From: Octopus bimaculoides
Taxonomy: Eukaryota
Direction: 5' to 3'
NCBI RefSeq assembly: GCF_001194135.2
Contig: NC_068981.1
Location: forward strand, 100,194,276-100,258,275
Length of the DNA stretch: 64,000 bases
A program made the position numbers and the translations under genes. A model generated the notes under the pieces. The model saw only the letters and a list, made by a program, of their open reading frames with translations. It did no database searches and was not told the DNA's origin. Of this stretch, positions 7,018 through 7,519 are shown piece after piece (within the stretch, counting starts at the first letter, position 1; each line of letters starts with the position of its first letter).

Positions 7018-7519
7018 TCAGGCTGGAGATGGGAACGATGACTTCCCTTTACAAATAATGATAGGCCACAGATAGTGTGTCAATAACAAGCTGGAGAAGA
7101 TGACTTCCTGGGGCTACAGCTATAGTAGTATCGACCCTTAAGGTGGCAAATACACTTCACAATGTCGTGCAGCTACTGTTTATAACTCACTCAGAGATTT
7201 ATTATTGCTTGTTTCCATTTTTTCGAGATCAGTGACTTTTCATCACTGGAAAAAGTATATATATTTGCATTGAGAGCCATTTCCCATCACCAATCGGTGG
7301 TTGCCACACGCTGATGACGGGTCAATACCCAGAAACTCGGGTCCGTGTGTATCACGTCAGGCTGGAGATGGGAACAATGACTTCCCTTTGCAAATACTGA
7401 TAGGGAACAGATAGTGTGTCAATAGCCAGCTGGAGGAGATGTCTTCCTGGGACTACAAGCTACAGTAGCATTGACCCTTAAGGGTTAGCCACATTTAGGT
7501 GGCAAATATACTTCACAAT
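7018..7519 (+). repeat. 339-bp tandem repeat, 1.5 copies, carrying a hammerhead ribozyme (retrozyme or Penelope pLTR-like)
   Basis: TCAGGCTGGAGATGGGAAC starts at 7018 and again at 7357; shared part about 88-90% identical by manual alignment; ends in a long (TA)n. Confidence 0.9.
7297..7355 (+). ncRNA. Minimal type I hammerhead ribozyme motif
   Basis: Stem I CACACG(7305-10)/CGTGTG(7344-49); core CTGATGA 7311-17; stem II GGGT-CAAT-ACCC; GAAA 7332-35; 2-bp stem III AC-TCGG-GT; GUC cleavage triplet (C7343). One defect: C7318/A7331 mismatch at the base of stem II. Confidence 0.8.

Follow-up and report, generated by a model that had tools for sequence, protein, structure and literature searches.

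A candidate 1.5-unit copy of a hammerhead-bearing, retrozyme-like repeat within an interrupted SINE

Organization of the locus

The DNA analyzed here, a stretch of 64,000 nucleotides referred to below as the window, is AT-rich (35% G+C), contains five assembly gaps (2323 N) and is dense in dispersed repeats and microsatellites, features that identify it as eukaryotic scaffold sequence. Within it, a tRNA-like dispersed SINE is divided into two parts, between which lie one and a half units of a head-to-tail repeat carrying a type I hammerhead ribozyme motif, followed by a compound microsatellite. The features of this locus, with their positions in the window, are listed below.

6846-7023, + strand: left part of the SINE (tRNA-like, dispersed), ending in ...CTCTCTCATCAGGC and alignable to eight or more further copies within the window
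7018-7356, + strand: repeat unit 1 (339 bp), from repeat finding, blastn and pairwise alignment
7357-7519, + strand: partial repeat unit 2, corresponding to unit positions 14-176 past the cleavage site and ending in ...CACAAT
7297-7355 (core 7305-7349), + strand: type I hammerhead ribozyme motif, read from the sequence with a pair list, a descriptor and a covariance model
Between C17 (7343) and C1.1 (7344), + strand: predicted self-cleavage site, placed by hammerhead numbering
7518-7667, no strand assigned: compound microsatellite (TRF), on the 3' side of the insert and within the interruption of the SINE
7668-7715 (end approximate), + strand: right part of the same SINE copy, resuming with CTTGCTGTACCTAT...

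The repeat has a period of 339 bp, and its two units are about 90% identical according to repeat finding and pairwise alignment. Repeat finding matched 7013-7118 with 7352-7457 (period 339, 89%) and returned two more in-register pieces ending at 7163/7519, while blastn aligned 127 nt of the units at 89% identity and a further 23 nt at 96%. In the pairwise alignment, the units differ by 14 substitutions and a 1-nt indel, and unit 2 has 16 additional nt near 7484-7499. These three approaches agree on the head-to-tail repeat and on the coordinates that had been proposed for it in an earlier note on this DNA. The homology runs unbroken from 7018/7357 to 7163/7519 and halts exactly after CACAAT, beyond which unit 1 continues with GTCGTG... 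and unit 2 enters (AT)n. The earlier statement that the second unit ends in (TA)n is thereby borne out, as the alignment stops at 7519 and TRF places (AT)44.5 at 7518-7606, followed by (AC)17.5 at 7606-7640 and (AT)13 at 7642-7667. The 339-bp period itself was not reported by TRF, the reason being that only 1.5 copies are present. The divergence of about 10% between the partial units would reflect either an old copy or a template transcribed from an already diverged array.

With a GC content of 43%, compared with 35% for the window, the unit contains no ORF longer than 46 aa and has no Pfam match, and no tRNA was called by ARAGORN in the SINE and repeat region. Further copies of the unit were not found by blastn within the 64-kb window; a 28-nt match of 79% at 56292-56319 was rejected as another copy and is without CUGAUGA. 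Copies were also sought outside the window. The read-through translation of the unit had no match in a set of 5.8 billion proteins, an 18-mer of the unit gave 21 matches in prokaryotic genomes, about the number expected by chance and none extending beyond 18-24 nt, and the hammerhead pattern was not found in viral contigs.

The hammerhead motif and a metagenomic relative

Every hammerhead element listed in the earlier note was recovered at its assigned bases from the sequence and the pair list. Helix I, which is open-ended, pairs C7305-G7310 with C7344-G7349 over 6 bp, and beyond it an internal loop 1 (UGC/U) is closed by a distal stem of 5 bp, including one G.U pair, between 7297-7301 and 7351-7355. 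The catalytic core is present in the correct order and spacing, with CUGAUGA at 7311-7317, GAAA at 7332-7335, U7342 and C7343, and a GUC at 7341-7343 precedes the predicted cleavage point. Helix II (7319-7322/7327-7330, GGGU-CAAU-ACCC) can be drawn with 4 bp, loop CAAU and a mismatched level at its base, or alternatively with 3 bp, a mismatch and a 6-nt loop. Helix III consists of two pairs, A7335-U7342 and C7336-G7341, with loop UCGG, and lies within ACUCGGGU, which is wholly self-complementary when G.U pairs are counted and would thus allow two copies to pair through a helix III of 8 bp. The sizes of the three helices correspond to those of the canonical metazoan type I hammerhead, in which helix I has 6 bp, helix II has four levels and helix III has 1-2 bp with a small palindromic loop (PMC4209133). 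The base of helix II departs from the consensus: C7318.A7331 is a mismatch, and the conserved G10.1-C11.1 pair is absent.

The degree to which such a motif exceeds chance expectation depends strongly on how it is defined. A full descriptor of our own, comprising the core and the three helices and applied to both strands of the window, recognizes no complete hammerhead other than the site at 7305-7349. When the window was shuffled 2000 times with its dinucleotides preserved, a motif of at least this quality occurred in 0.65% of the shuffles, with a mean of 0.007 per window. A relaxed descriptor was satisfied in 10% of the shuffled windows, and the loose core pattern, with 2.7 occurrences expected per window, is uninformative by itself. 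Even the strict rate corresponds to hundreds of chance motifs per gigabase genome, and the motif alone is therefore no proof of a ribozyme. An independent measure was provided by a covariance model (R1) built from four experimentally validated retrozyme hammerheads, namely coral Amil224, mussel Mg353 and axolotl Ax353 and Ax330, taken from the supplement of PMC7229834, with the present locus left out. When the whole window was scanned with filters off (128 kb, both strands), its top match was 7305-7349 on the + strand, at 23.6 bits and an E-value, to be taken as rough, of about 1.8e-4; the second-best match, at 15.1 bits, is no hammerhead.

Rfam reported no hammerhead in the whole window at the gathering score, nor at E<=10 on segments of 801 nt or 81 nt around the motif. 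Related motifs in two metagenomic loci described below (L005 and L002) are also missed by Rfam, which points to a limited power of this test for variants with a short helix III. The only strong Rfam match in this region, to mir-297 at 7575-7645 on the minus strand, was rejected as low-complexity sequence, since it coincides with the (TA)n(CA)n tract; at 48 bits it stays below the gathering score of 90. In terms of folding energy, the hammerhead fold is predicted at -13.4 kcal/mol compared with -18.3 kcal/mol for the minimum free energy (MFE) structure (z of about -0.2), although one would not expect a hammerhead core to be the MFE fold. No extra stability over shuffled sequences was found for the hammerhead region, for the linear unit or for the predicted circular monomer (circle z -0.16), whereas published retrozyme circles have been described as highly self-paired. 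Taken on its sequence features, the motif is supported as a genuine-looking canonical metazoan type I hammerhead.

A metagenome scan with CTGATGANGGGTNNNNACCCNGAAAC as query returned seven loci, among which L005 alone is closely related, and over the ribozyme only. This hammerhead, at bases 578-620 of the eukaryote-like metagenome contig ERZ1740055 NODE-19508, agrees with 7311-7342 at 29 of 32 bases, and it too has C at position 10.1 and A at 11.1. Its helix III is the perfect palindrome ACUCGAGU, and every pair of its helix I differs from the pair found here while pairing is kept. Its flanks are unrelated, no repeat surrounds it, and its cleavage site follows GUA rather than GUC. In three of the remaining loci (L002, L006 and L007) the motif is a different one, with ACAUGU as its short helix III and U.C at 10.1/11.1. 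The contexts of L005 and L007 contain no repeat, Pfam domain or long ORF and are thus uninformative on a link to Penelope-like elements (PLEs).

This relative bears on the caution, raised in the earlier note, that the C7318/A7331 mismatch may inactivate the copy. The caution is a fair one, but it is softened by the occurrence of the same C and A in L005 and by the active axolotl Ax353 ribozyme, which likewise is mismatched at the base of helix II (U.U); its monomer reached 22% cleavage within one hour, and its dimer performed far better (PMC7229834). The C/A common to this locus and L005 may point to a tolerated mismatch, such as an A+.C wobble, or else to parallel CpG-to-CpA decay of a C-G pair, given that the present DNA has CCCA in place of the CCCG needed for pairing. 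The ribozyme at this locus lacks the usual G10.1-C11.1 pair and is probably weak.

Interruption of a SINE

The boundaries of the insert can be read against other copies of the SINE. In seven other copies in the window, the SINE continues uninterrupted across the junction as ...CTGGGGTC(R)ATGTAATC...CCCC...AAATTTCAGGCCTTGTRCCTA.A.TAGAAA..., and the junction itself reads ...CAGGC|CTTGT... in these copies. Here the SINE breaks off at ...CATCAGGC (7023) and picks up at 7668 with CTTGCTGTACCTATGCAATA; when the flanks are joined (7023 + 7668), the SINE block ..CAGGCCTTGT.CCTA.. / CAGGCCTTG..TACCTAT is restored. The hexamer TCAGGC (7018-7023) is common to the SINE and to the start of the repeat unit, which leaves the left junction ambiguous over 6 nt, and no target-site duplication is visible at the insert. 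A GGGTC at 6995-6999, considered as a remnant of an upstream ribozyme, was rejected since it is part of the conserved SINE block CTGGGGTC.

Because the SINE is split at this locus and continuous in the seven other copies, the repeat arrived by insertion, as a mobile element. On this comparison, the hammerhead 1.5-mer and the microsatellite together form a single interruption of a pre-existing SINE, a product of transposition and not of local duplication. The microsatellite is absent at this point from the other aligned SINE copies, and a tail that was brought in by the insert, or that grew out of it, is more likely than a (TA)n target already in place. A target preference for (TA)n has been described in the context of PLEs (PMC8557442), and the possibility of such a pre-existing target was downgraded here since the other copies carry no microsatellite in that position.

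Relative to the ribozyme, the insert begins 13-19 nt past the cleavage phase (7005) and stops 176 nt into the second unit; the start of the array at 7018 is thus 13 nt after the base equivalent to the cleavage position, in agreement with the distance given in the earlier note. By our own arithmetic, a start within 19 of the 339 possible phases of the cleavage site would occur by chance in about 5% of cases if the phase were random.

Identity and origin of the insert

The marks of non-LTR retrozymes include a type I hammerhead within a head-to-tail repeat of about 170-400 bp that has low GC and no ORF, LTR, PBS or PPT, mobility, and at least two ribozymes flanking a unit. The first set of characters is found at this locus, and mobility is indicated by the insertion into a pre-existing SINE. 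The hammerhead count, however, is one, as the first cleavage phase lies ahead of the start of the array and a second ribozyme would lie beyond its end. With one hammerhead only, a single cut is possible (7343/7344), and no 339-nt monomer or circle can be released from the locus. The description of the family as retrozyme-like, put forward in the earlier note, therefore holds for the type I hammerhead and the short, ORF-free mobile repeat and falls short in the number of ribozymes, and the accompanying proposal that unit RNA is cut to monomers or circles of about 339 nt does not apply as far as this locus is concerned. Copies with a single hammerhead have been described as 'monomer derivatives', non-transposing offspring of retrozymes (bioRxiv 10.64898/2026.07.22.740005). 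In a similar way, the present locus is probably a dead 1.5-mer with one weakened ribozyme rather than a source of 339-nt circles.

On balance, the region from 7018/7024 to 7667 is reasonably likely to represent one old insertion in a SINE, namely a 1.5-unit copy of a hammerhead-bearing non-coding retroelement of the non-LTR-retrozyme type with a simple-repeat 3' tract. Weighing against it are the single locus, the silence of the Rfam hammerhead models, the C.A in place of the G10.1-C11.1 pair, a unit that is not unusually structured, and the lack of a target-site duplication. Recent work regards non-LTR retrozymes as non-autonomous derivatives of the terminal repeats of PLEs, and mobilization by a PLE reverse transcriptase is an idea that derives from the literature, which the window neither supports nor refutes.

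A different explanation, which appears unlikely, is that the repeat is a pLTR fragment of an autonomous PLE, the remains of a tandem insertion that was recombined or lost much of its 5' part, with no separate non-autonomous family involved. PLEs do carry hammerheads in their pLTRs and form partial tandem insertions, often beside (TA)n (PMC8557442; PMC4209133), and retrozymes and pLTRs are sequence-related in Xenopus, so that the classes intergrade (bioRxiv 10.64898/2026.07.22.740005). Against this stand the 339-bp head-to-tail units with no ORF between them and the outcome of the search for coding sequence, in which the three + frames of 2500-12400 yielded no Pfam domain and nothing resembling an RT or GIY-YIG was seen among the open segments of the window, where the long open segments were inspected and the minus frames were covered by eye and through selected segments. 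The RT/GIY-YIG ORF that the earlier note had considered near the array is thus not seen, and with no ORF attached, the repeat is not the pLTR of an intact PLE, as that note's alternative would have it. The ribozyme is also of the canonical form, with 6 bp in helix I and four levels in helix II, and lacks the traits of the minimal hammerheads of PLEs, which have 4-5 bp in helix I, 7-8 bp in helix II and a single additional base separating A9 from the conserved G10.1-C11.1 pair (PMC4209133); here loop 1 is closed, helix II is short, and unpaired bases flank helix II on both sides instead of one extra base.

Equally to be weighed is a SINE-like hammerhead retroposon, comparable to the Schistosoma Sm-alpha element of about 335 bp, moved by a LINE that recognizes simple-repeat tails, with neither a PLE nor circular RNA. 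Many LINE/SINE partners terminate in simple repeats. The long simple-repeat tract 3' of the insert, foreign to the target SINE, fits this view, as do the 6-nt microhomology at the 5' junction, which is common in target-primed reverse transcription, and the fact that no PLE was seen in the window. In the unit itself, on the strength of an ARAGORN search that found no tRNA, no Pol III boxes or tRNA-like head were seen, nothing points to a particular LINE partner, and a length greater than one unit is predicted by rolling or template-jumping copying of unit-length RNA (PMC4209133). As a complete account, this retroposon is improbable, and such a LINE nevertheless stays a live alternative to mobilization by a PLE. 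Less credible still is a chance hammerhead-like motif, never a ribozyme, in an unrelated local tandem duplication or minisatellite. The expected rate of about 0.007 motifs per 62 kb, or hundreds per gigabase genome, speaks for coincidence, together with the silence of Rfam, the mismatch at 10.1/11.1 and a hammerhead fold that is not the MFE. It is opposed by a repeat of retrozyme size that was inserted in a SINE rather than locally duplicated and that starts just past the cleavage phase, by the self-complementary helix III and the distal stem closing loop 1, by the independent covariance model (E of about 2e-4), and by the 29/32-identical motif in L005.

If the insert is indeed a copy of a non-LTR-retrozyme-type element, a mechanism of the following kind can be envisaged. 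Multimeric arrays elsewhere in the genome would be transcribed from the + strand, and their hammerheads would cut after GUC, probably best as dimers in which ACUCGGGU lengthens helix III. The resulting unit-length RNAs, with a 5'-OH and a 2',3'-cyclic phosphate, might be circularized by a host ligase of the RtcB type, and a reverse transcriptase acting in trans would then copy more than one unit into a nicked target, as has been proposed for these elements (PMC4209133; PMC7761336). In the copy described here, the 5' end of the template would have been produced by ribozyme cleavage and joined to the target through the 6-nt microhomology TCAGGC; the start 13-19 nt past the cleavage phase fits a template end of this origin.

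A bolder extension of this scheme, which must be regarded as doubtful, would take the locus as a footprint of the movement itself, that is, of a ribozyme-cut RNA longer than one unit whose cDNA terminates some 15 nt or less from the cleavage site and bears a simple-repeat 3' tail. The family would then be an undescribed, possibly cephalopod one, and C10.1/A11.1, potentially an A+.C wobble, would have been kept by selection as in L005, perhaps with pH- or dimer-dependent activity, instead of reflecting decay. Hammerhead retrozymes in cephalopods received no mention in the open literature searched, an observation that concerns absence of mention only. If the source genome holds such a family, hammerhead retrozymes would be extended to one more animal lineage, and the clean junction, consisting of a split SINE with paralogous 'empty' sites, would bear on a point that reviews have left unsettled, namely the RNA form and the reverse transcriptase responsible for the movement of such elements. 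A lone decayed 1.5-mer adds little beyond the examples from coral, mussel, axolotl and Xenopus. On inspection, the long open segments in the window showed remnants of the Tc1/mariner type only, including a Mos1-like fragment with HTH_48 at 48005-48370 (Pfam), whose protein matches reach at most 51% identity.

Several known systems resemble the present locus in different respects. The closest are the metazoan non-LTR retrozymes Amil224, Mg353 and Ax330/Ax353 (Cervera & de la Pena 2020, PMC7229834), in which a type I hammerhead likewise occurs on one strand of an ORF-free, GC-poor head-to-tail repeat of 170-400 bp and the 2-bp helix III lies in a self-complementary stretch (ACGCGCGU in mussel). 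Unlike these elements, which range from dimers to large multimers, the present copy has 1.5 units and a single ribozyme, and it carries G-C at 2.1/1.1 where the four references have A-U. The minimal hammerheads of PLE pLTRs (Cervera & de la Pena 2014, PMC4209133; Craig et al. 2021, PMC8557442) are also of type I, with a short palindromic helix III suited to dimers, and share with the present locus the tandem insertions longer than one unit and the association with (TA)n; they differ in the RT/GIY-YIG ORF, the dimensions of helices I and II, and the G10.1-C11.1 pair discussed above. Finally, Schistosoma Sm-alpha and newt satellite 2 (cited in PMC4209133) have units of about 330-340 bp and the same layout of helix I, loop 1 and distal stem. 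Neither is known to share sequence similarity with the present repeat beyond the ribozyme core. Loop 2 of the Sm-alpha and newt satellite 2 ribozymes is CAAAUA, and the corresponding loop here would be the close UCAAUA if U7322-A7327 is unpaired.

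Dispersed repeats and microsatellites around the insert

The copy interrupted by the hammerhead insert and its 3' microsatellite belongs to a dispersed, tRNA-like SINE family with at least nine copies within the 64-kb window, the others sharing 74-79% identity with the copy at 6846-7023. Its conserved core comprises, in order, ...GTTCTGAGTTCAAATTCC...AAGTACCAG....CTGGGGTCRATGTAATC...CAGGCCTTGTRCC..., part of the copies carry an (ATT)n tail, and ARAGORN called no tRNA in the SINE.

6846-7023 and 7668-7715, +, SINE copy, interrupted
about 10490-10680, 31100-31290, 39740-39930, +, SINE copies
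about 61880-62070, 38960-39150, 38770-38960, 29440-29630, 27370-27560, -, SINE copies

A second dispersed repeat was observed, in which conserved flanks, translated as ..SVSI.QIHSQGFG.P.A.VEDTC.. and ..FNV.FPCWHGLD..., enclose internal (TA)n/(CA)n tracts. In the source genome, microsatellites are often carried along within a repeat family.

about 3000-3300, 5450-5740, 9460-9680, 12000-12350, flank-conserved (TA)n/(CA)n repeat
about 23500-23800, 25400-25800, 47200-47550, 59640-60016, flank-conserved (TA)n/(CA)n repeat

No likeness was found between these flanks and those of the microsatellite at 7518-7667. The Rfam mir-297 match at 7575-7645 (-), scoring 48 bits against a gathering threshold of 90 (E 1.5e-7), lies wholly inside the (TA)n(CA)n tract and is a low-complexity artefact.

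The N runs in the window total 2323 N, mostly have simple repeats, such as (TA)n, at their edges, and are assembly gaps at microsatellites; the repeat arrays of this region may therefore be under-assembled.

about 90-860, 14600-15050, 21130-21500, 50320-50680, 54910-55380, N runs

Repeats within the unit and coding remnants

Inside the 339-bp hammerhead unit lies a direct repeat, GCTGGAGA(TGGGAAC)GATGACTTCC, which is kept in both units.

7021-7046 and 7090-7111, internal direct repeat, unit 1
7360-7385 and 7429-7450, internal direct repeat, unit 2

Decayed Tc1/mariner-type transposase fragments occur at four places, one of them, shortly upstream of the SINE, containing WPPNSP..NPFDYYVWG and others being Mos1-like HTH pieces. 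Only the stretch 48005-48370 scored in Pfam, as HTH_48 with E 1.6e-7; the nearest database proteins are unnamed JGI entries with at most 51% identity. Two further open segments resemble the C-terminal part of the ORF2 proteins of invertebrate non-LTR retrotransposons; a Pfam search gave no match for them.

6275-6598, 16975-17241, 30674-30934, 48005-48925, +, Tc1/mariner-type fragments
13670-14105, -, two open segments, ..VLWDINVQTDCKI..; ..LVPIVVGALGTVTNKF..IQKCTLLGTAMVVRKVL

Hammerhead-like motifs on metagenome contigs

Several matches to R1, a covariance model built from four validated retrozyme hammerheads, were found on both strands of the metagenome contigs Ga0123352 and Ga0136643, which lack long ORFs.

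L002 (metagenome locus): 263-305 (-), 1939-1978 (-), 3515-3558 (+), hammerhead-like, model R1
L007 (metagenome locus): 12609-12651 (+), 10936-10975 (+), 9357-9400 (-), 3903-3945 (-), hammerhead-like, model R1

These motifs, the best of which has a palindromic helix III (ACAUGU) and U.C at position 10.1/11.1 at the base of helix II, may represent PLE- or retrozyme-type repeats of some eukaryote.
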